Assembly (NCBI RefSeq): GCF_000142905.1
Contig: NW_013657663.1
Span: forward strand, 1-64,000
Length of the DNA stretch: 64,000 bases
From: Thecamonas trahens ATCC 50062
Lineage: Eukaryota; Protista; Apusomonadida
Reading direction: 5' to 3'
The notes beneath the pieces are model-generated. The model was not told the origin of the DNA. It ran no database searches and saw only the letters and a program-made list of their open reading frames with translations. Positions 1 to 58,403 of the stretch are shown here, piece after piece; position 1 is the stretch's first letter; each line of letters begins with the position of its first letter. Made by a program: the position numbers and the translations under genes.

Positions 1-370
1 CACCGAGCCAGACGACGAGGCCACTTTGTGCAGTCCCTGTGGGCTTACTCATACGTGTGCTGTGTAAGCCATGTATGATCTTTGGTTGTTGTTTCGGCTG
101 TCATTGCGTCGTTTGTTCCAATCCCAAGCTCTCGTCTCCATCGACGTCCATCTCAATCCAATCCGCCGCCTTCTCTCTGCCGCCCAAGCCCCTGCACTCT
201 CATCAACCACACCCCACACACACCCATCAGCCGTATCATACTCACCTTCATCAATGCTCAAGCCCAATCGCCATACCTACTACCATTTCGCCCGTCACGA
301 CCCCACGTCACGACCCTCCTCATCCCCCCCTATCATACTCATTACCACCCGTCACCACAAACCACCACCC
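1..370. repeat. Degenerate direct repeat, copy A (partner at ~1438-1815)
   Basis: Shared blocks in the same order as copy B: cagacgacgaggcc; tccaatcccaagc-ctcgtctccatc-acgtccatctcaatccaatccg; caatcgccatacc; catactcattac. Confidence 0.8.
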
Positions 371-1437
371 GCACCCCCTACTCCACCACCATCACTATCA
401 TCCTAGCCACAACCACCACCACCTTGCCTTGGCCCGACCACCATCCCATCGCGCACTCGGCTTCCTCTTCCTCCTCATCGTCCTCCTCTCCCCGCTCTAC
501 CTCACCCCCATCCGCATCCCCGACTGTGACACCGCCATCCCTCAACCATCACCAGTCATGCTACCCATCGTCCAACCAACAGCAATCTCGAGCCACCCAG
601 TCCCGACCCAGCCCCCTCAGCTGCCCCCGCCTCACCGACCACCAGCCGCCAGCCGCCGCCCGCTCGCCCGATCAGCCCACCTTCACCACCACCTAGCTTC
701 TTTCCACTACCAGCTACGCAACCCGCGACCACACCCAAGGTCGTCACTCGCCCACACTATCACCAGTATCAATATCGCTGTCATCGATACCCATCTTCCT
801 CGGCTCATTTCCGCGTCGACTTGTTCTGCCTAGGTGGTTGAGCACGCCCTCGACCGCCCGACTCCGCACACGCCCCCCACCAACCTCATTGCAAGATATG
901 GGCAATCTGATTTCACTACTACCCGACTCCATACCCACTCTCTCCCCTTGCACAATCTCCAATCCACAGCTGCAGTATTCCGGAATCCGAGTTCTGCCAC
1001 CCGAGGCCCAACTTGTTGGCCTGGTGTCGTTTCGATGCTGCTCACCCCCCTCCCCGGGCCCATCTCCAACCCCCACCCCCCACCATCTTCACGCACAACC
1101 ACCACACCCACACCACACATACTCACTACCCCTGCAATCATAACCATCCACTTCACCTGCGCCGATCCTCACATCAGCCGACGCCAACCCGTCAACAGCA
1201 TCGCTGCCGACCGCCTGCTGCTCACCGCCGACCGCCGCCCGCCGCCGACCGACCACCACCGGCACCACCGAGAGCAAGCTAGCTATCGACAGAGCATCGG
1301 AGACCATGCATACGGATAGCCACGTTATTGGCAAACACTACCAGTTTGCCCTCCAACCCACTTCTCCCCTCCCTTCACCGGCCTTGCCCATCACCCTCCC
1401 CGCCGGCCTGCTCATCGCCAGCCGCCCCTGCTGCCGA

Positions 1438-1815
1438 TCACCGAAGCAGACGACGAGGCCTGTGGGCTGGCCAAGCCGAGGATGAACAAGAGAGGGCAAG
1501 GGCAATTGATAGGCAGTACAATGATGGGCTAGAGCGCAGTGGTCTGCCTTCTCGTCCAATCCCAAGCCCTCGTCTCCATCAACGTCCATCTCAATCCAAT
1601 CCGTCCGCCCTCCTCTCCCCCGCCGCCCAAGTACCCGCCTCCCCCCTCTCCCACACCCCACTCATACCCACCAGCCTCATCGCGCCCATCCACGTCCACC
1701 TGCAAGCTCAATCGCCATACCCACCGCCCCATCCGCTTGCTACGCCACCCACGCCACGACCACCCTCATCCCCTCCTACCATACTCATTACACCCCATCA
1801 CCGCCAACCACGACC
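1438..1815. repeat. Degenerate direct repeat, copy B
   Basis: Colinear similarity to 1-370 at an offset of ~1440 bp. Confidence 0.8.
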
Positions 1816-2050
1816 ATCTATTTCTTGTTGCTCAACTACACACCCCCTTGCATGCATCCACCCACCCCTCCCCTCCTTCACTAGTGCTACCTATCCAACA
1901 GACGAGTCCTCATCAATGAATTATATCCTTACATTCTTCCCCGGCTCTTCCCCCGGCACTCGCCCGTTACCCAAAAATTCCTGCAAACACCGCCTGTCGC
2001 CCTCGCCGCCACACTCATAGCACGCACCGCATACTCCTCTCACACCACCC

Positions 2051-5000
2051 ATGGACCCTGCACTATGGGGGACAGACGACCCTCCACACCTCGCACCCAT
2101 CCTAGTGCAGCAGGGTACTGCCAAGCGCCGCGCAAGGCAGCCGCCCGAGCCGGGGCGAGCCGCCAAGCGCCCCCGCCCGCTCCTCACCGCCAACGCCAGC
2201 AGGGCCAGCTCGGCCACTTCTTCCTCTGTCGTCCTGCAAGACACGGAGATGAAAGTGCTGTCCTCGTCACCAGCCGATGCCCGCACCTACACCAATGACA
2301 ATTACGACTGCGACATCTTCATCTGTCACGGATCGCTCGATAAGAGTTTAGCCAGGAATGTCCGCAAGAACATCCTCGCCCGCTATCCAACTCTCCGTGT
2401 TTTCGTCGACGACGAGTCGCTTGACGGTATCCGCCACCCTCATCCGGACGACTGTGCCGCCATCGACGTTCGCTCACGGCTTGTTCTCATCCTCGACACC
2501 AACTTTGTCGTCACGCGCTACGTCATCGCCGAAGTCGATGCAGCGCTTGTTGGCGCTGCCAACGGCGGCAATCCCGTCTTCCCAGTCTTTATTGATAGCG
2601 ACATCTCGCTTGCTGAGCTTGGCCGGCTGCACAGTGTTGCAGCCCGGCCCGCCGACGATGCTAATTTCGCTGCAGCCAAGGCCTGCGCCCAGTACGTGGA
2701 CAACGGCGGTGCCCAGGCCGAAGTCGTTTTCCTCACTGCCCACAACGTTGACACCCACACCCACATGCTTTCGCTCGTGGCTTTGTTGGACACCTTCTTC
2801 ACTTCCGGCGACAAGAAGCGCCAGTACGACACCTGGCACCAGCGTCTTCTCGCGCACAATTGGAATGACCATCACATTCGCACGGCCTACCGCCTCATGG
2901 ACTGGGGTCTCGCCACTTACGACGACCGTCGCATCTCCTCGGGTACCGCCGTCGTTGACATTGCTCAGCACTCCCTCGCCATCCTTGCCGGCACGATGCA
3001 GTTACCGTCCCGTATGCCGCCACCATCCAAACTGCCCGAATATTACCCGCTCCCTGACACTCGCGCTGCGGTCATTGACGCGCTTCTCGGTGCGAACAAC
3101 GTCTCAGTCGTCGGTGTCAGCGGGCTTGGTGGCGTTGGCAAGTCGTCGCTCGCTGCCGATGTTGCCGTCCACCCCGCCATCACCTCGGTCTTCTCCGTCT
3201 TCTGGCTCGCTCTCGGTGAGGACAAGACATCTCCCATCGCCATTGCCAGCCGCATGTCCTACTTCCTGAAGCAAGGCCTCGGTTGCGCAGTCGATCCACA
3301 AGCTGACCTCAATTACCTGCAAAGTATCCTTGCTGACAAGACCCAGACCCTCGCCGACGCCGGCACTCGCATCTTGCTCATCCTCGACGATGCGTGGACC
3401 ACCCGCCAGGCCACCGCCTTCACCAAGCCCATTGCAGCTCGACATGCGGTCCTCGTCACCTCGCGCAACGCCGCCATGGCGGCCATCTCCACCTCCTCTG
3501 TTCAGCTCGGTACCTTTGGCCGGGCCGACGCAGCTGTTGTCCTTCGCAACTACCTCGCCAAGGGCTCACCCGAGTGGGCAAACACCCTTGCTCTCAACGA
3601 TCACCGCATCGTCTCCCTCGCGACCTTCTGCCGTGGCCATGCCCTCGCCCTCGCTATCCTTGGCTCGTCCATATCTGGCGAGGCTGCACTTGACGCCGCT
3701 GTTGCCAACTTTGATTCGGCCTCCAAACGTGCTTTTCGCAAGCACCGCAAGTCAGAAGGCGGCACCGACGCCAAGCACGCCCACATCTTTGACATCATCA
3801 CTTGGACTCTCGGCGATGCCATCCCCAAGTGTGTCCGCAAGGTGGCACTCGCCATTTACGCCATGCTCGGCGTCTTTCCATCAGACACGCCCGTCGACGT
3901 CGCCAACTTCCGCGCCACGGTCCCAGCGGACGATATTGGCTTTGCTGCGGCCCTCGACGCCCTTGCCGATGCCTCTCTCCTGCGCGTCGTTGCCAAAGAT
4001 GGCGGCGCCATCACCGTGATCGAGATGCACGATCTGCACCTCAAGTACATTCGCCATCGGCTTGAGGTGTGTTTTGACGACATCCCTTCCCTTCCTGCCC
4101 GTCACCTCGCCGTTGTCGCCGGGGTGCCTCCGCCTGGCGCCACGCCAGAGTCCGCAAAGGTGGCAATAACCTCTGGTACTGCCTCCAATTGGATCGTTAC
4201 CCGCGGTATTTCACACATGATTGCAGCCGGAGCGAACCATGCCGCCGTTGCCGTTGCTCTCTCCTGGGCATGGATGAAAGCCCGCGCAGACGAGTCGCTT
4301 GGTGGCCTCCTCAACGACCTGCGTTGTGTTGTTCGCCTCGGCTGCAAAGGAGCCCAGCACGTTGGCGAGGTCGAGCGGGCCCTATCTCTCTCACGTGAGA
4401 TCATCCAGAGAGGTAAGTCGTACATCGAGACCGAGCTCGTTGCCCGACTCGACTATCCCCAGCCATCCGATACAATCACGCAGCTGGTGGCTGCTGTACG
4501 CGCGGATGCATCACACGGGGCTTTTCTCCCAGCGGCAGCTATTGACCCTGTCACGCATCGTGATGCTCGACGCTTGTACTGTCATGGCGAGTATGACGAC
4601 AACTCTGTCATCGGTGACTCGCTGGTTGCCGGTATTTGTCGAAAGAATGTGGAGGTTTCAGACATGCTACCCAGGGCGCGCGTAGAGTGCCTGAAAGGCC
4701 ACACCAGCATGATATCCGGCGTGATCGCGCTGCCCAGTACAGATGGCGAACTGCCTGTCCTGGTTTCGTGGTCTTGCCACGAGACAATCCGAGCCTGGCA
4801 TCCTGCAGACGCCAGAACGGGCACTGTGCCGTACACCGCGGACACTGTCTTTTGTGAGGTGCTGGAAGGCCACACCAGCATGATATCCGGCGTGATCGCG
4901 CTGCCCAGTACAAATGGCGAACTGCCTGTCCTGGTCTCGTGGTCTAGCGACGAGACGATCCGAGTGTGGCATCCTGCGGAAGAAGGCACGGGCTCGATGA

Positions 5001-5836
5001 GGTACACCGCAGACACTGCCTCCTGCGAGGTACTGAAGGGCCATATCAGCTCAGTGACAGGCGTGGTGGCCCTACCAAGTGCTAGCGGCCAGCTGCCGGT
5101 CTTGGTCTCTCGGGTGGGTGGGTATCAAAACAAGGAGAACGCGATCCGGGTTTGGCATCCTGCGGACGACGGGACAGGCGCCATGCGGTACACCGCGGAA
5201 AACGCCTCCTGCGAGGTGCTGGACGGCCACACTAGCTGGGTCTCTCGCGTAATTGCACTGCCGAGTGCAGATCGCCAGCTTCCTGTCCTCGTCTCGCGGT
5301 CGAGAGACAAGACAATCCGGGTGTGGCATCCCGCGGACGACGGGACAGGCGCCATGCGGTACACCACGGACAACGCCTTCTGCGAGGTGCTGAAAGGCCA
5401 CACCAACTGGGTGCTCGACGTTATTGCGCTGTCAAATGCGGATGGTCAACTGCCTGTCCTGCTTTCTTCAGCATACAAGGAAGTGCTCGAGTGGCACCCC
5501 TCACCCACCGGCTACACTCTCCGCGCCCACTACCCCCTCTCCATCTCCGCCCACCCCCGCACACATCCCACCCGCATCACTATCGCCAACCACACTGGCC
5601 TTGCCACTTGCCACCCCTCCTATCCCAATCGCATCTTCGTCGCTTTCCCCATCCGCCCTCCCATCATCCTCCGCCGCCATCCACAACATCGTGTCCACTC
5701 CCTCATCCTCGCCACCGCCAGCACATCAGTAGCTCCCAGCGCCATGGCCCTTCCCCGCGGATCGCACGACCAACACCGCCGGATGTCATCCGAGCCGGCC
5801 ACTATCCCGCATGCCACGTTGCCAGTGAAAGCCTAG
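2051..5836 (+). CDS. NLR-like STAND NTPase: TIR(TIR_2) - NB-ARC - APAF-1-type helical domain - WD40 repeats
   Basis: TIR: DIFICH..D.....RVFVDDESL...LVLILDTNF..TRYVIAEV...VFPVF. Walker A GLGGVGKS, Walker B ILLILDDAW, RNBS-B VLVTSRN, GLPL-like GHALAL, MHDL. APAF-1-like WAWMKAR...LLNDL and ALSLS...ELVARL. GH...IRVW WD repeats. Confidence 0.9.
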   Translation: MDPALWGTDDPPHLAPILVQQGTAKRRARQPPEPGRAAKRPRPLLTANASRASSATSSSVVLQDTEMKVLSSSPADARTYTNDNYDCDIFICHGSLDKSLARNVRKNILARYPTLRVFVDDESLDGIRHPHPDDCAAIDVRSRLVLILDTNFVVTRYVIAEVDAALVGAANGGNPVFPVFIDSDISLAELGRLHSVAARPADDANFAAAKACAQYVDNGGAQAEVVFLTAHNVDTHTHMLSLVALLDTFFTSGDKKRQYDTWHQRLLAHNWNDHHIRTAYRLMDWGLATYDDRRISSGTAVVDIAQHSLAILAGTMQLPSRMPPPSKLPEYYPLPDTRAAVIDALLGANNVSVVGVSGLGGVGKSSLAADVAVHPAITSVFSVFWLALGEDKTSPIAIASRMSYFLKQGLGCAVDPQADLNYLQSILADKTQTLADAGTRILLILDDAWTTRQATAFTKPIAARHAVLVTSRNAAMAAISTSSVQLGTFGRADAAVVLRNYLAKGSPEWANTLALNDHRIVSLATFCRGHALALAILGSSISGEAALDAAVANFDSASKRAFRKHRKSEGGTDAKHAHIFDIITWTLGDAIPKCVRKVALAIYAMLGVFPSDTPVDVANFRATVPADDIGFAAALDALADASLLRVVAKDGGAITVIEMHDLHLKYIRHRLEVCFDDIPSLPARHLAVVAGVPPPGATPESAKVAITSGTASNWIVTRGISHMIAAGANHAAVAVALSWAWMKARADESLGGLLNDLRCVVRLGCKGAQHVGEVERALSLSREIIQRGKSYIETELVARLDYPQPSDTITQLVAAVRADASHGAFLPAAAIDPVTHRDARRLYCHGEYDDNSVIGDSLVAGICRKNVEVSDMLPRARVECLKGHTSMISGVIALPSTDGELPVLVSWSCHETIRAWHPADARTGTVPYTADTVFCEVLEGHTSMISGVIALPSTNGELPVLVSWSSDETIRVWHPAEEGTGSMRYTADTASCEVLKGHISSVTGVVALPSASGQLPVLVSRVGGYQNKENAIRVWHPADDGTGAMRYTAENASCEVLDGHTSWVSRVIALPSADRQLPVLVSRSRDKTIRVWHPADDGTGAMRYTTDNAFCEVLKGHTNWVLDVIALSNADGQLPVLLSSAYKEVLEWHPSPTGYTLRAHYPLSISAHPRTHPTRITIANHTGLATCHPSYPNRIFVAFPIRPPIILRRHPQHRVHSLILATASTSVAPSAMALPRGSHDQHRRMSSEPATIPHATLPVKA
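4697..5495 (+). repeat. Coding tandem repeat: 171-bp (57 aa) WD40 units, 4 full plus 1 partial; unit 3 is 186 bp
   Basis: GGCCA(C/T) unit starts at 4697, 4868, 5039, 5225 and 5396, with long stretches of near-identical DNA. Confidence 0.95.
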
Positions 5837-51328: not shown

Positions 51329-52464
51329 ATGAAGCGCGGCCGCCCGTCCACGACGACGTCGACAACACTTGCGCTTGCCCCTGTGAGCAAGCGGAGCAAG
51401 GGCTTGTCGTCCGGAGAGGGCTCGACAGCACTGGCGACGACGGTGGAGCGGACGTCGTCGCTGGCGGCTGCCAACCTGGTCCTCTCGGGCCATGACGACG
51501 AGGTCACCTGCGTGGCCTTTGCCGGCAACGGACGGACACTGTACTCGGGATCAAAGGACCGCTCGGTCATTGTCTGGCCTGTCTACTCGGACACCATCTG
51601 CTCCATCGGTCATCTCCGTGGCCACTCGTCGGCCGTCACGGGCCTCGCCTGCCCCTCCTCTACTGCTGCCGCTGGCTTTGATCTGGCTACCTGCTCTGCA
51701 GATGGCTCGCTGCGGACGTGGGATGTGGCGAGTGAGACGTGCGAGGTCATTGCTCGTCTTGACGACATTGTTAACGATGTGGCGGTTCTGGACAACTCCT
51801 CGCTCCTGGCCGTCGTCACCGACGGCGGCGTGCTCACTGTCCGCGATGCACGCTCGCGCGCTGCCGTCTTCTCAGTCTCGCTCTCATCGCCGCTGACTGC
51901 CACGGCGCTTGCCAACGAGGCTGATGGCCCCGCCGTGTACGCTGCCGGCATCGACGGCGTCGTCCGCAAGTACTCGCTGGCGGCGACCTCCGACGCCGCG
52001 CCTGTGCCGCTGCTGGAGCTTGCGCCGCGCGTCCGCGCTCCGCCGCCGCTCTCGGCCTTGGCTCTAGCACCCTCGGGTGACGCCCTCCTCACCCGCGACC
52101 TCGACGGCCTTGTCCGCGTCTGGGACATCCGGCCCTTTGCCCCGCCCATCCGCGAGCTGCGCGGCTTCACCGGCCCTCACGGGCCCGAGGCCAACCCCGA
52201 GATGCGACCGCTCCCGCTCGCCCTCGCGCCCAACGCCTGGCTCGACGCCGCCACCCGCGCCACCCACGCCACCCTTGCTCTCGGCGGCTCGCTCCACGGC
52301 TCGCTCTACGCCTGGCACTCGGGCTCTGGCGAGCCTATTTACGAGCTTCCTGGCCACACTGGCCCGGTCCTCTCCATCGCCTGCTCCCCCCTGAGCCCAT
52401 CATCGCCACTGGCGCTGCCGACAACACCATTGTCCTCGGCGAGATCGACGCCTCTGTCTTGTAA
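51329..52464 (+). CDS. SNRNP40: U5 snRNP 40 kDa WD40 protein-like (frameshift at ~52390)
   Basis: RTSSL....VLSGH.DEV, VRVWDIRPFAP, YELPGHTG.V. Adding one C gives EPIIATGAADNTIVLGEI and a stop at 52462-52464. Confidence 0.8.
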
Positions 52465-52477
52465 CACCCCCTCCCCC

Positions 52478-52577
52478 NNNNNNNNNNNNNNNNNNNNNNN
52501 NNNNNNNNNNNNNNNNNNNNNNNNNNNNNNNNNNNNNNNNNNNNNNNNNNNNNNNNNNNNNNNNNNNNNNNNNNNNN
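52478..52577. other. Assembly gap (100 N)
   Basis: N run; causes the false read-through ORF 51329-54508. Confidence 1.
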
Positions 52578-52594
52578 TCCCCCCCACCCCCCCT

Positions 52595-55500
52595 ATGGAC
52601 TCTGACGGGGCGACATACCTCCAGCTTGTGTCTGCCAACAACGCAGAGGCCAGCGTCTATGCTACCTTTGCCACCTTTGAAGAGGCCGTCTATGACGCCC
52701 TGCCGACCTACACCGACACATGGGAGCAGCTGGTGGTGACATCCACAAAGACCAAGACACTCGCGCTGAGCAAAGAAGATCGGAAGCGGGCAAGTGCTTC
52801 ACCACCGCAACCATGGAATCGTCTACCCATTGCTCTCTCTTCTATGTCTGATCTCAAAGTCCTCATCCTCGCCCACAATGCCTTCTCATCGCTTCCTCCT
52901 GATCTTGGCCTCCTCTCGAACCTGCTCTACCTCGACATGGCGCACAACGTCATAGACTCGGTCTCGGCTTCGGTTCTTTGCTCTTGTTCCGCGCTGCAGA
53001 CTCTCTCGCTTGCTGGTAACAAGCTCACCGCTTTTCCAGACCTCTCATCCGTCTCCTCCCTCACATCGCTCAATCTCTCCGGCAACGCCATCAACGCCAT
53101 CTCGGCTTCCGGCCCGCTCATCCCCCACTCTCTGCGCATCCTGGACCTCGCTGCAAACGGGTTGAAGAAGATCTCTGGTACCTTTCTGGCCCACCACGGC
53201 TCGCTCACCTCGCTCTCGCTGGCGAACAACCCCAAGCTCAAGGCTCTGCCCGCCCTCTCCTTCCGCTTTGCCGTCTCGTCCCTCCGCAACCTCGACCTCT
53301 CCACCACCGCTGTCTCATGGCTCCCTGCTCCGGTCTGTGCCCGCCTCCGCAAGCTTGAGACGCTCAACCTCCTCGACACCGCAGTCGCACACCTCCCGCC
53401 ACAGTTTGACTCGCTCGTCCGCCTTCACACCATCTCGGCGCTCAACTTCACCCTCTCCGCCGACTCGGGCCTCGACGTCAAGGGCTCGCTCCATCATTTT
53501 TTCCGCCTCTGTGGCCAGACCGCTCTTCCGCTCTTCCGCTCCGCTTTTGCTGACCTTCTCCTCACCCACGAGCCGAACACCTACGATGTCATCCGCGCCG
53601 GCGCCGCCCCGCGCTACCTCGATCTTCTCCGCTCTGATGTTTCGGCCCTTGTCGAGTCCGCCATCAACGTCCTCTCCAAGCTCCTCTCCTCCGAGCACAA
53701 CAAAGCCGAGCTCCTCTGTGCCGGCCTCATCGAGGCCCTCGGCCCGGTCCTCGCCACCGCGCCCACTGAACTTGTCGAGCTCGCCACTTCGGGCCTCGTC
53801 AAGCTCTGCACGTTTTCCACCCCTACGTCAAGGTCCTCTTTGCCGAGCACGGCGGCACCCGCCTCCTCGCCTCGCTCTCCACCTCGGACATCCCATCAGT
53901 TGCTCGCTTTGCCGCTGACGCCCTCTCCGCTCTCGCCGTCCAGATCCCAGCCGCAGGCATGCTCCAGGTCCGCGTCCTCGAGGCCATGCAGCTCGTCGAC
54001 CCGTCGACCGGCAAGTCGCCGTCGTCGGCCTACGCCGTCCTTCGCGTCGGCACCGAGAAAACGACCACAGAGGCCCGCAAGGCTCCCGACGGCGCCCCGG
54101 CCTGGTCGCGCAACGCCCAGCTCAATGTCGGCATTGCCGACGCCATGGGCCGCATCATCACCGTCAAGCTCTACAACCGCCGCACCCTTCGCAAGGACGT
54201 CTTCCTCGGCTCGGCCCGCCTCCCGGTCCTCACCTTTCTCGACGGCGCCGTCGTCGACAACTGGTTCCAGCTCCGCCCGCCCGACTCGCGCGTCTCGTCC
54301 GAAGCCGCGCTTACTGGATACGTCCACATGCAGATCCAGTTCACCTCACAGGCCTCCTCCTACTTTGAGAACATGGCCCAGAACGCCCGCGTCTGGGCCT
54401 TCCCCCCGACATCCTCAAGCGCCTCGCATCGTCGGAAGCCGCCCCGTCACCTTCGCCGCTCCCGGCCCCGGCCCTTCCGATCATCGTCGTCAACGGGACA
54501 CCCGGTAGCGCGCCCTCGCCCGCCCTCGACGCGCCCGCCATACACCCGGAGCCTGCCACCTACTCCTCCATGCTCGATGCGCTCGACGGCGATGCTCGTC
54601 TCTACGAGATCCTAACCCTTGGCCTCGACGCCTCGTGCGCCGTCTACTTTGACTCGGACACAGACGCCTTTCTTCACCGCGAGGCCTTTACCAAGGTGCA
54701 GTACACCAACCGCCACTCGGAGCAAAAGTACTTTTACGCCACCCGCAGAAGACCGGAGGCCACCGCAGTTGACCTCTATGTCTCTTTCATGGGCACCTAC
54801 TCGCTTGCAGACGCCGCCATCGACTTTAATGTCCTTGCCCACGATGCCCTCAACGGCCGCATCCACGCCGGCTTTGCCCAGCGCGCCTACGCCATTCCGC
54901 TCCTGCCACTCCTCGAGTTCCTCCGCCCGCCATCCACCACCGCCGCCGCCCGTCGCGGTGCCCTCGTCCTCTGCGGCCACTCGCTTGGCGGTGCTGTCGC
55001 CGTCATTGTCTTTCTTCGGCTCATTGTCGAGTGCTCCATCACGCCCGACGAGCTCCGCCGCATCCACGTCGTCACTGTCGGCCAGCCGCTTGTGGGCGAC
55101 ACCGCGCTCGCCGCCTACGTCCATGCCCTCGGCGTCCACACCCGCATTCACGCGATCGTCAACCACGGCGACTCGGTCGCGTGCTTCTCCTCGGCCTCGC
55201 CGCGCATCATTGCCCAGAACCTCATCCGCCACGCCAAGGACGCCACCGTTGCCAAACTCCGTCAGCTGGCGCAAGAACGTGCCGCATCGTCGCCGTCGGC
55301 CGACGAACCGCCGTCTCCCGCCGCCGCCTCAGAGTCGGACGCTCTCAACGCGCTCATGACCTCGCCGTCGTCGGTCGCCGTCGACGTCCTCACACACTAC
55401 ATCGCTGCCCGCTCCACAGACGTCTTCTTTGACTTTACCCCCTTTGGCATTTCGTACATGATCGAGCACCCCGCTGCCCACGAGGGCACCGCCCGCTACG

Positions 55501-58403
55501 ACGGCGCTGACTTTACCGTCACCGTCGCCTCCGATCCAGCTGTCGTCAAGCGCTGGCTCGACATGCCACCCGAGGGCCTCTCCACCTACAACCTTGACCA
55601 GCACAAGTTGTACTACTACTTTCAGAACTGGGAGGGCCTCGGCCCGCCGCCGTCCGCAACGCCAGACCTACTCTCCTTCCCGCTCCACTCGCTCGCCTCT
55701 TACTCGGAACGCTACGGCGGCTTTGGCGACGACGGCCTCGCTCTCTCGGTCGAGACCCGCGACGAGCCGGTTTCCTACGCCGAGGTCTCCGACGTTGTCG
55801 ACGTCTCCAACTCGGCCGATCTCGCTGTCGACCTGGCTTCGGAACTTGTCTCGGACCTCGGCACCCCGTCGCCGAGCCCAGGCCCGCGCCCCACCTCCGA
55901 CACTGCGTCGGGTGGGGGCGCAGGTGCCGGCAGTGGGAGTGAGCCGAGCGGCAGCGCGCCGCTCATCCACCTCACCACCTCGTGGGCGCCGGTCATCTCG
56001 TCGTCGCACGCCGTCTTTGACTCGCGGACCGCCTCCATCGAGGTCATCCTCTTTGGCCGCTCGCTCCTCTTTGTCTCGCGCCTCAAGTTCCGCGGCGACG
56101 ACTTTGACTACGAGCCAGTCTTTCTTACCGACACCGAGCTCCGGTTCCGGCTCCGCTGGCTTCCGGCCGTGTACGGAAAGGAGGAGACTGCCGCGACGTC
56201 GGACGGCAGTGGACTGTCGGCCAGCGAGTCAGGAGGAAGATCCGCCGAGGTGGCGGCGTCTATGGGAGACAAGGCCTCTACCCGTCCCGGCTCATCGTCG
56301 GAAGCCGCCGCCGCCGCCTCGCTCGAGGCCGCCGTCAAGCTCGGCTCGTACGAGTCGCTCACTCTGCGCGTCATCTCGCACTTTGGTGAATCGCGGGTCA
56401 AGCTCAACCTGGCCCAGCATGCCAAGTCGATGTCGCGCGTCGCGCGGGTTGCGCGCAAGTTCTGGGTCGAGGAGCAGCGCCGCGCCGCCCGCGCCTCCAA
56501 GCTCATGGCCGCGCTCCCGCCCGCCGCCCGCGCCTCGCTTCCGTCGCACTGGACCAACCCGGGCGCGGTCTTTGCCATCTCATGGCAGGGCCTCACCAAC
56601 GCGCTTGCCTCGGTAGCGTCGACCATCGAGCACACTGACCTCGTCGAGTCGCTCGCCTCGGCCTACCTCACCTCGTCAGCTTTCCAGGAGTACCTGGCCG
56701 AGTCGGGCGATGTGCAGCTTCAGTTCTCGCACTTTGCCGTCCGCTCCATCTCGTTCCCGGCGCCGCGGGTCGCCATGGACGCTCTGCACAACAAGGTCGG
56801 CGTGGCGCTGGCGGGTATTGCCATCGAGCTCGAGGCCGCCTTCTCGGTTGTCCGCCTCACACAGTTCCTCTCGTACACCAACGTCGGTGTCACCGTCTCG
56901 ATCTCGGACGTCGGCGGCAGTCTCGAGCTTAATGTTGTCGAGACCGCTGACGACGTTCTCTCGCGCGCCGCTGAGGCCGACGACGGCTCGGACGACGGAG
57001 AACTCCTCACCGAGGATCTGGTGGCTGTCATGGCGCCGCCGGCCTCGTTTGCGCTCCGCATTGGCAAGCTCGACGTCGACTTTGGCCTCGAGCTCACCGA
57101 CGACAAGGGCGAGGTCCTCGCTTCCAAGGACAACTGGGGCTTTTCCGGCTTTGTCCTCTCGCAGTTCTCCGGCTACATCAAGTCGTCCATCTCCAAGGCG
57201 CTCGACTCGGTCCCGATCGAGGCTGCGCTCATCTCCGAGCTCACCCGGGTCTTCCTCGAGGGCAAGCCTGGAACTCACATCCCGCTCGCCGGCTCGGCCT
57301 CGGTCCTCACTGCAGACTACTCGCTTGTTCGCGCACCGCCTCTCAAGCGCGAGGCTGCGTCGTCGATGCTCTGCACCGGCCATCGCGGCCTGGTGCGGAC
57401 GTACGGTCCCAACGTCCCACCCGAGCACTACGCGGACATCCCGCCGCCGCGGCCGATGGATGCCGCGCTCTCGATGTCGAATCTCCACGACGCGGTCGTC
57501 GCCCTCTCGCCGGCCATGGTCACCTCGGTTCTGCTCGCTGGCTGGCACGCCGGCTTTTTCGCGCTCGACGTCGCTGCCTCTGACCTGCCCGACTCGCTCG
57601 CCGACCCAGAGCTCTTTGCACACTACGCTTCCGACGCGCCGCCGGACACACCGTTCCACCTTGCAGTGGCAGTCACATCGCCGCCATCGGTCGTCTTTGA
57701 CAGTGACCATGGCATCTGCCTCTGTCTGCACGCCGACTTTACTCTTCTCTCCGGTGATGGCGACGGCACTGCACACGAGCCGGTCCACACCGAGCCGTTT
57801 GTGATCGATGTGAGCCTGGACCCGACTGCACTTGCGCTTGGTGATGACGGCCTCGCCGGCGCGAGCATCGAGATCCGGCCGTCGGACGGTGTCGCCGAGT
57901 TTGATGCCGGTCTCGGTCCGGTAGCGGCCGTCGTCCGCCAGTTCCGGACCGAAATCCATGACTTTCTCGTCCTTGCCTACTCCTCGCGGCTGCTGAGCCT
58001 TGTCGTCGATTGGCTCCGAGCCTCGCCGCTCCTTCTCCTCGATTCGGTCAAGCGAGTGGTGGCGCAGTCACAGGCCGAGGTTGCGCTCTTCCCCGACGCG
58101 CTTGTCATCTCGTTTGTGGTTCCCGAGTACGTCCTCGACGAGCGCGAGGTTGCCGCCGTCGTCGCCACCACCCGCGACCTCCTCGGCTGGGGCACTTCGT
58201 TCCCCCTCCTCAACGCCACCGCGTCACGCAAAGGCAACGACAGTGGAGACGATGCCGCGTCGCCATCACCGCCTCGCGACGATTTTGCCATGGATTCGTT
58301 CCTCAACCGATTCGGCGCCTGGCTCGAGCGCCACGTCCTCGTCCATCGGCACGGCGACGGCGGCGGTCTTCCTCAGGGCAGCCTCTCGCAGCCGGTGTCC
58401 TGA
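52595..58403 (+). CDS. Multidomain LRR - ARM - C2 - class 3 lipase - IPT-like - BPI/LBP (TULIP) protein (frameshifts at ~53815 and ~54405)
   Basis: LRRs ~52810-53440; ARM-like helices ~53560-53940; C2 LQVRVLEA...DVFLGSARLP...NWFQL; lipase SFMGT, IHAGF, GHSLGG, VTVGQP.VGD, VNHGD; BPI-like DYSLV.AP, ALS..MVTS.L.A...AG, PPSV.F. Confidence 0.75.

Follow-up and report, generated by a model that had tools for sequence, protein, structure and literature searches.

At the beginning of contig C17 (533,784 bp) of the apusomonad flagellate Thecamonas trahens ATCC 50062 lies a long open reading frame (ORF) at positions 2051-5836 of the forward strand. It was analyzed here within a window comprising the first 64 kb (64,000 nucleotides) of the contig. 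The ORF is a single frame without interruption that encodes 1261 amino acids (aa), and its best protein match is the organism's own gene model, P0001. No ORF in another frame overlapping positions 2051-5836 exceeds ~300 codons. We consider it likely that the gene belongs to a Thecamonas-specific family of receptors of the STAND/NLR type, composed of a basic N-terminal extension, a TIR domain, an NB-ARC module and WD40 repeats, for which we propose a TIR-signaling mechanism. The NB-ARC module consists of a nucleotide-binding domain (NBD), helical domain 1 (HD1), a winged-helix domain (WHD) and helical domain 2 (HD2), collectively abbreviated NOD (nucleotide-binding and oligomerization domain). 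Loci are labelled L001-L016, proteins P0001-P0023, and the assembly G000, with contigs C17, C22, C70 and so on. The features of the gene, in coordinates of the window, are:

1820-2050, forward strand: region shared with the paralogs (66-91% DNA identity), a putative promoter or 5' untranslated region
2051-5836, forward strand: whole ORF, 1261 codons and stop, comprising N-terminal extension, TIR, NB-ARC/HD1/WHD/HD2, WD repeats and a read-through tail
2051-2248, forward strand: N-terminal extension, aa 1-66 (MDPA...), with upstream ATG and reading frame kept in paralogs
2123-2179, forward strand: basic stretch KRRARQPPEPGRAAKRPRP, aa 25-43, which fits the pattern of a bipartite nuclear localization signal (NLS)
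2306-2815, forward strand: TIR domain, ~aa 86-255, from Pfam TIR_2, a profile comparison with plant TIRs in the PDB, and an AlphaFold2 model searched with Foldseek
2531-2533, forward strand: Glu161 (in RYVIAEV), at the catalytic position of TIR NADases, in predicted helix alpha-C
3065-3685, forward strand: NB-ARC domain, Pfam match at aa 339-545, 51 bits
3122-3145, forward strand: P-loop motif GLGGVGKS, aa 358-365
3374-3391, forward strand: Walker B motif LLILDD, aa 442-447
3464-3466, forward strand: sensor-1 Arg, in the motif TSR ending at aa 472
3629-3652, forward strand: GLPL-like motif CRGHALAL
4025-4033, forward strand: MHD motif, aa 659-661, closing the WHD and conserved in an alignment with 30 distant homologues
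4031-4507, forward strand: HD2 of Apaf-1 type, ~aa 661-819, from the predicted fold
4568-5551, forward strand: WD region, matched by Pfam WD40, with a degenerate leading blade from aa 840 and five units of 57-62 aa
4685, 4853, 5024, 5210 and 5381, forward strand: starts of the five WD units
5573-5683, forward strand: homologue of the conserved 3' flank of the paralogs (RITIANHTGL...ILRRHP), an in-frame read-through inside the possible intron 5431-5739

The public model P0001 describes the same locus as a protein of 1035 aa, annotated 'WD-40 repeat protein', that starts at M67. It leaves out exactly one WD unit of 171 nucleotides (nt) (window 4742-4912). No GT-AG junction is possible for this omission within the 47-nt sliding stretch (47 identical bases), and we take the missing unit for an annotation artefact, which probably arose when a transcript or model was aligned over repeat flanks that are identical. 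P0001 also removes 309 nt at 5431-5739, where a GT-AG intron is possible.

The start of the protein was analyzed by comparison with the paralogs described below. The upstream ATG and the frame from there down to the TIR domain are kept in at least seven paralogs, with every indel being a multiple of three, and L006, one of the paralogs, lacks an internal Met where the equivalent of M67 would be. Substitutions within the extension are distributed over the three codon positions as 151/182/221, a mild third-position excess. The comparison suggests that the extension is likely to be coding and that translation begins at the long start. A preliminary description of this DNA had noted an N-terminal basic, NLS-like stretch. 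This stretch is indeed present in frame at aa 25-43 and is conserved in at least seven paralogs, although its extent varies: KRRARQPPEPGRAAKRPRP is kept in L005 and L008 and reduced in L006, and L004, L001 and L002 share a 14-codon deletion that leaves AKRPRP. The protein might be targeted to the nucleus.

We next consider the N-terminal head, for which a TIR_2-type domain had been claimed. Pfam TIR_2 matched the protein at aa 89-206 with 29.7 bits (cut-off 28), a score that is marginal on its own. In a six-frame search of the genome the locus reached 34.4 bits, and several paralog TIRs reached ~42 bits. NCBIfam returned weak partial matches only (FxSxx_TPR and retron TIR). A profile built from 11 family TIRs best matched solved plant TIRs, with AtTIR (3jrn) at E 5e-6 and ROQ1 at E 1e-4, followed by RPV1 and RUN1. 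An AlphaFold model of aa 80-320, made from a 12-sequence alignment (pLDDT 70.5, pTM 0.71), has the predicted element order bA-aA-bB-aB-bC-aC-bD-aD of a flavodoxin-like beta-alpha fold. An insertion at aa 202-237, likewise present in paralog L010, is modeled with low confidence. The top Foldseek matches of the model were the TIRs of the plant NLRs RPS4, RPP1, RUN1, L6, SNC1 and RPV1 (probability 1.00), which align over ~230 columns with a target template modeling (TM) score of up to 0.71. The bacterial and animal TIRs of AbTir, SARM1 and MyD88 ranked after the plant TIRs, with ~110 columns. The HMM and structure searches that the preliminary description had proposed as a check thus agree in predicting a TIR fold for the N-terminus, closest to the TIRs of plant NLRs.

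The Glu in RYVIAEV, pointed out earlier at codon 2531, corresponds to aa 161. It is invariant in the 11 related TIRs and, in the family profile, aligns with the E of the plant motif WCL(D/E)EL in AtTIR and ROQ1. In the model it is residue 82, within helix 77-91. The conserved TIR Glu is established as the catalytic residue (Essuman 2018 and Horsefield 2019, cited in PMC12881547). On the evidence of profile and predicted fold, the N-terminal head is a TIR domain with Glu at the catalytic position.

Outside the family, the most closely related TIRs are those of P0011 and P0018, TKL kinases with C-terminal TIRs. The presence of such kinases among the at least 27 TIR_2 matches of the genome would fit a TIR that acts as a non-enzymatic adaptor, in the manner of animal TLR/MyD88, and recruits one of the numerous other TIR proteins of Thecamonas, e.g. 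such a kinase. The conserved NLS-like stretch, together with a plant TIR-dsDNA complex (7x5l) among the fold matches of the model, would fit a nuclear nucleic-acid enzyme (a 2',3'-cyclic nucleotide monophosphate synthetase or nuclease, as certain plant TIRs are). In either case the domain would not deplete NAD+. Catalysis is favored, however, by the invariant Glu and by the fact that the nearest similarity is to plant NLR TIRs with enzyme activity, and we regard an adaptor or nucleic-acid role as improbable.

The NB-ARC domain contains the complete motif set that had been reported, including MHD. In comparison with 30 distant homologues, G361/G363/K364, D446/D447, R472 and H660/D661 are invariant or nearly so; within MHD, the H is nearly invariant and the D invariant. 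NB-ARC scored 51 bits, whereas NACHT reached only 17 bits, under its cut-off of 26.7. A structure model of the NOD (aa 300-850, pLDDT 86.9, pTM 0.83) found ADP-bound Apaf-1 (1z6t, 3sfz) as its best match, with a TM score of 0.64-0.68 over 524-544 of 551 columns. Apaf-1, NRC, ZAR1, CED-4 and Dark all matched with a probability of 1.00, indicating an NBD-HD1-WHD fold. In contrast to Apaf-1, the plant NLRs NRC, ZAR1 and Sr35 align over ~380 columns only. This difference in coverage is the reason to conclude from the model that an HD2 of Apaf-1 type is present, although Pfam APAF1_C is blind to it: neither APAF1_C nor WHD_APAF1 matched the protein at E <= 1. The helical domain of the preliminary description is therefore borne out by the predicted fold, with Pfam silent. 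Among the 48 nearest relatives outside Thecamonas, 34 carry Pfam APAF1_C, 21 the Apaf-1 WHD and ~25 WD40.

By plain sequence search, the nearest solved NB-ARC domains are those of tomato NRC1 and NRC2. A Pfam scan of the protein found no CARD, the N-terminus being a TIR. Since it is without a CARD, the protein is not an orthologue of Apaf-1.

To place the gene in its genome, TIR and NB-ARC matches were counted. There are at least 21 for NB-ARC and at least 27 for TIR_2, and ~12 pairs of a TIR with an NB-ARC match lie on one strand, ~0.6 kb apart. The gene proved to be one of at least 13 paralogous loci, mostly contig-terminal; this count had also been proposed as a check. Fourteen loci were examined, L001-L013 being located on C22, C97, C71, C59, C39, C38, C57, C64, C67 and C70. 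Note that the copy and repeat numbers are lower bounds, as several arrays hold frameshifts or N-gaps. For 13 of the 14, the distance to a contig end is at most 12.5 kb, and for eleven at most 3 kb, the 5' end invariably facing outward. No telomere repeats (TTAGGG and variants) were seen in the contig ends examined, and we therefore call these positions contig-terminal rather than subtelomeric. The sole family locus far from a contig end (43 kb) is L009 (G000:C70:64500-72000), a more distant paralog whose open frame runs for ~390 residues before reaching the TIR start motif. L009 has an ankyrin-like stretch (…GGADVNVADKDGGTPL) upstream of the TIR and no 57-aa WD units.

The NODs of the paralogs are 77-88% identical to that of the window gene. 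In contrast, their TIRs fall into four subtypes that are 32-50% identical to the window TIR and to one another, all of them retaining the Glu; the TIR of L010, which is of the same subtype, is 78% identical. The finding of similar NODs with four divergent TIR subtypes suggests that the N-terminal TIR heads have been swapped between paralogs.

The WD repeats of the family are variable in a different manner. We compared 72 distinct 57-aa units and found them near-invariant except at positions 9, 10, 12, 32, 34 and 55. The entropy at these six positions is 1.85-3.15 bits, at least 2.5 bits for the first five, and the third-codon-position identity at the other positions is 0.92. In the unit motifs V-x-G-V and S-W-S-x-D, positions 10, 12 and 32 correspond to R1-2, R1 and D-1, which are contact residues of the WD40 top face as defined in PMC3419727. 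Fungal NWD/HNWD recognition genes follow the same regime, with near-identical WD units that vary at few positions (PMC4986451, PMC12881547). Thus, the pattern of internally conserved units with hypervariable surface positions is found in the family, and weakly in the window copy.

A giant gene model, P0015 (2359 aa), stands at the very end of C70 (G000:C70:103500-114015; L011 and L014). It has several NB-ARC modules and TIR-like stretches downstream of a WD array. Two SIR2_2 matches were noted in the genome, at G000:C6:367527-367832(-) and G000:C76:30-398(+), the one on C6 within an open frame of 912 aa; SIR2_2 is the SIR2 type associated with defence systems.

Word-index searches for relatives outside Thecamonas, run with the full-length protein as well as with its NOD region, returned essentially only Thecamonas paralogs. 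At more distant similarity, protein P0016 from an ENA metagenome (ERZ27290035; L015:2251-5478) is a TIR_2-NB-ARC-LRR_6 protein, in domain order like a plant TNL, 31% identical, with a TIR and linker that are clearly homologous to the TIR subtype of the Thecamonas loci C22, C97 and C67b. The GC content of L015 is 0.56-0.60. P0017, from a TARA marine metagenome (L016:331-4071), is a TIR-NB-ARC-TPR protein. P0019, from a metagenome-assembled genome of Anaerolineae, has the order DUF4062-NB-ARC-APAF1 WHD-APAF1_C-WD40. P0021 and P0023, from JGI metagenomes, have the order TIR_2-NB-ARC-(WHD_APAF1-APAF1_C)-WD40 and are ~28-30% identical (E 1e-13); the contig of P0023 holds several further TIR genes. 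Only P0019 and P0020 are named as bacterial among these relatives, and the source of P0021 and P0023 is probably prokaryotic. By domain annotation, the order TIR-NB-ARC-WD40 thus exists outside Thecamonas. The novelty lies in a eukaryotic family that has expanded and is diversifying, and not in the domain order. We found no literature linking Thecamonas or Apusozoa with TIR, NB-ARC or NLR proteins, the survey by Urbach & Ausubel 2017 (PNAS) lying outside the search.

The size of the family, its contig-end positions, the swapping of TIR subtypes and the hypervariable repeats together point to a role in non-self recognition, the non-self being a pathogen, a virus or a conspecific. A housekeeping or developmental STAND protein, such as an apoptosome-like or regulatory switch without any non-self role, would account for the Apaf-1-like NOD with its HD2, and regulatory roles are also known for WD40-STAND proteins. 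Such a role is at odds with a species-specific multi-copy family located at contig ends, with hypervariable contact residues and exchange of TIR subtypes, and with the finding that only four proteins among 1.84 billion representative proteins matched at E <= 1e-30, all of them named Thecamonas. We therefore consider it very improbable.

The window copy itself is an outlier within the family. Unit 3 of its WD array carries a 5-aa insertion, the Trp or Asp of SWSxD is gone from units 3-5, and unit 5 decays into the 3' flank that is common to the paralogs. Two units in register, other than the two best-preserved ones, have an identity of 0.45 to the family consensus at non-hypervariable positions. 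The array stands outside the homogenised repeat pool. Synonymous divergence (dS) between the window copy and every paralog is ~0.3, compared to 0.035-0.053 for the two other pairs sampled (L008/L004 and L001/L004), and the ratio of nonsynonymous to synonymous divergence (dN/dS) of the window copy to its paralogs is 0.38-0.53. Judged by these comparisons, the window copy is an old, diverged outlier under moderate constraint, with a weakened or altered sensor. The WD40 sensor repeats of the preliminary description are thus present, but they amount to only five 57-aa units and a degenerate leading blade. No other member of the family has a WD sensor as short or as degenerate, and the sensor competence of the window copy is therefore doubtful. 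It may have a weakened sensor or an altered one (e.g. constitutive or helper-like), or it may be a gene heading to decay.

The best-supported reading of these results, by analogy with known systems, is a receptor that would oligomerize and thereby activate its TIR. At rest, the NOD would be ADP-bound and locked by the contact between MHD and WHD and by the WD propeller. A ligand would contact the top face of the propeller, where the paralogs have their hypervariable residues at R1-2, R1 and D-1. Ligand binding would unlock the NOD, allowing nucleotide exchange and oligomerization. Clustering of the TIRs in the oligomer would then create a composite active site around Glu161 that cleaves NAD+, and either NAD+ depletion or a nucleotide signal may lead to cell death or a defence state. 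The ligand, the oligomers, the enzyme output and the role in this scheme are drawn by analogy with Apaf-1, plant TNL resistosomes and bacterial STAND sensors, starting from the domains, motifs, predicted folds, family structure and variability pattern described above. Of the 'TIR-apoptosome' receptor that had been proposed for a protist, the architecture and the eukaryotic host stand, and the agreement of these features goes well beyond coincidence; the gene is, however, not singular, being one of at least 13 loci, and it is not an Apaf-1 orthologue.

Several observations weigh against a receptor of this kind at 2051-5836. With respect to the TIR, the TIR_2 match is only 1.7 bits above its cut-off and the model is of moderate confidence (pLDDT 70.5). 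With respect to the sensor, the window copy has 5 units versus 7-12 units per open frame in the paralogs. The tetrad Asp is kept in 2 of the 5 units, with units 1, 3 and 5 lacking it, and the two best-preserved units have an identity to the family consensus of 0.84-0.86 at non-hypervariable positions, compared to paralog medians of 0.86-0.96. The ORF extends into sequence that in the paralogs follows the stop codon or sits out of frame. A dN/dS of ~0.4-0.5 indicates moderate constraint and is not assignable to the window copy's own branch. Finally, the defence models of PADLOC gave no match, and no known downstream partner was found: EDS1_EP had no match in the genome, the control set being likewise without a match.

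Some of these observations would also be expected if the window copy were a decaying or truncated paralog, that is, a pseudogene in the making or an inert remnant, in which case the family would be real but no working sensor would exist at 2051-5836. The reduction to five units, the insertion in unit 3, the losses of SWSxD in units 3-5 and the degeneration of unit 5 are consistent with decay, as are the position of the array outside the homogenised repeat pool and the high dS to all paralogs. Consistent with decay as well, the public model requires the 309-nt intron and a repeat skip at a junction without GT-AG. On the other hand, the frame is open over 1261 codons while overlapping ORFs in other frames reach at most ~300 codons, the P-loop, Walker B, sensor-1 Arg, MHD and TIR Glu are intact, and dN/dS is under 1. 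We consider decay of the window copy unlikely, though clearly less so than the two alternatives discussed above.

Returning to the receptor that would signal by TIR oligomerization, a broader proposal can be made for the lineage. Apusomonads are, by established phylogeny, close to animals and fungi. Their NLR repertoire may diversify itself and unite, in one protein, a plant-type catalytic TIR, an Apaf-1-type NOD with HD2 and a fungal-style hypervariable WD40 sensor; we put this forward tentatively. It is customary to view plant TNLs, the animal apoptosome and fungal NWD receptors as separate constructions from shared parts. The genes occupy subtelomere-like positions, and in uncultured relatives the same TIR-NOD module is found on LRR (TNL-like, P0016) or TPR (P0017) sensors. 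If the proposal is correct, TIR-NB-ARC receptors signaling by induced proximity would be no plant peculiarity among eukaryotes. Such receptors would either date from early in eukaryotes or have come from bacteria, with an independent domestication into a protist system for immunity or allorecognition. The family in this free-living flagellate makes it feasible to test whether induced proximity activates TIRs in eukaryotes generally, adds one observation on the bacterial versus ancestral origin of NLRs, and provides a candidate immune or allorecognition system in a lineage without a described one. The window copy, as a natural short-array variant, would be useful for analyzing the part of the sensor in autoinhibition.

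The genomic context of the ORF was inspected within the window. Its neighbors are ordinary eukaryotic genes, encoding an ODAD1-like coiled coil, saccharopine dehydrogenase, Rab GDI, an ABC transporter and CAND1, and no prokaryotic genome context was found, the 534-kb contig carrying eukaryotic genes. Bacterial contamination was considered as a source of the gene and ruled out, because the neighboring ORFs on this contig are ordinary eukaryotic genes and the family is spread over 13 contigs. Upstream of ~1820 the sequence has nothing in common with the upstream regions of the paralogs. The 2 kb from the contig start to the gene (window 1-1820) are C-rich, with a GC skew of -0.5, and contain an imperfect duplication ~1.4 kb apart (117-369 versus 1555-1815, 76% identity). 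The word caccga(g/a)c(c)agacgacgaggcc is present there at 1 and at 1439. Farther downstream in the window, a long ORF at 51329-54508 (forward strand) encodes a WD40 and LRR protein of 1059 aa. It is adjoined by an ORF at 54570-58403 (forward strand) for a protein of 1277 aa with an N-terminal class-3 lipase domain, in which Pfam, at E <= 0.001, reported no EDS1 EP domain.

Among known systems, plant TNLs (ROQ1, RPP1, RPS4, RUN1/RPV1) resemble the Thecamonas protein in placing an NB-ARC switch immediately after an N-terminal TIR. Both profile and predicted fold put the Thecamonas TIR nearest to those of plants, its Glu falling on that of WCLxEL, and the presumed logic, oligomerization activating the TIR, would be the same. 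In contrast, the Thecamonas sensor is WD40, that of the plant proteins LRR and C-JID, and the Thecamonas NOD has an HD2 outside the fold-alignment coverage of plant NLRs. The host is an apusomonad, and an EDS1-type EP was not found in its genome (the control was also silent).

Apaf-1 and Dark share with the Thecamonas protein the order NBD-HD1-WHD-HD2 followed by WD40, and the closed ADP-bound form of Apaf-1 is its best structural match. Unlike Apaf-1, the protein has a TIR in place of the CARD, and there is consequently no basis for caspase recruitment. Structure-based identity to Apaf-1 is 15-17%, whereas the nearest solved NB-ARC by sequence is that of plant NRC1/2. Moreover, Apaf-1 has a fixed double propeller, while the Thecamonas genes are multi-copy, with hypervariable arrays in the paralogs.

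The fungal NWD/HNWD proteins of Podospora (HET-E, HET-D, HET-R) are similar in combining a TIR-related N-terminus (HET), a STAND NOD and WD40. They also share similar WD units with variability at few surface positions, variation in repeat number and membership in a paralogous family (PMC4986451, PMC12881547). They differ in that the fungal NOD is NACHT and the Thecamonas NOD is NB-ARC. The Thecamonas TIR is canonical, not HET, its units are 57 aa long, and the array of the window copy is not homogenised.

The metagenomic TIR-NB-ARC-WD40/TPR STAND proteins are among the nearest relatives outside Thecamonas. P0021 and P0023 have an identical domain order, and P0019 has the same NOD-WD40 body. 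The Thecamonas gene differs from them in residing on a eukaryotic contig, in its expansion, in its NLS-like extension and in the lack of a PADLOC match. Finally, the animal TeTIR-NACHT-WD40 proteins (TEP1, NWD1/2) likewise combine a TIR-like NADase head, a STAND ATPase and WD40 in a non-plant eukaryote (bioRxiv 10.64898/2026.09.21.753143). Those proteins have an extended TeTIR and NACHT, whereas the Thecamonas protein has a canonical TIR_2 and NB-ARC.

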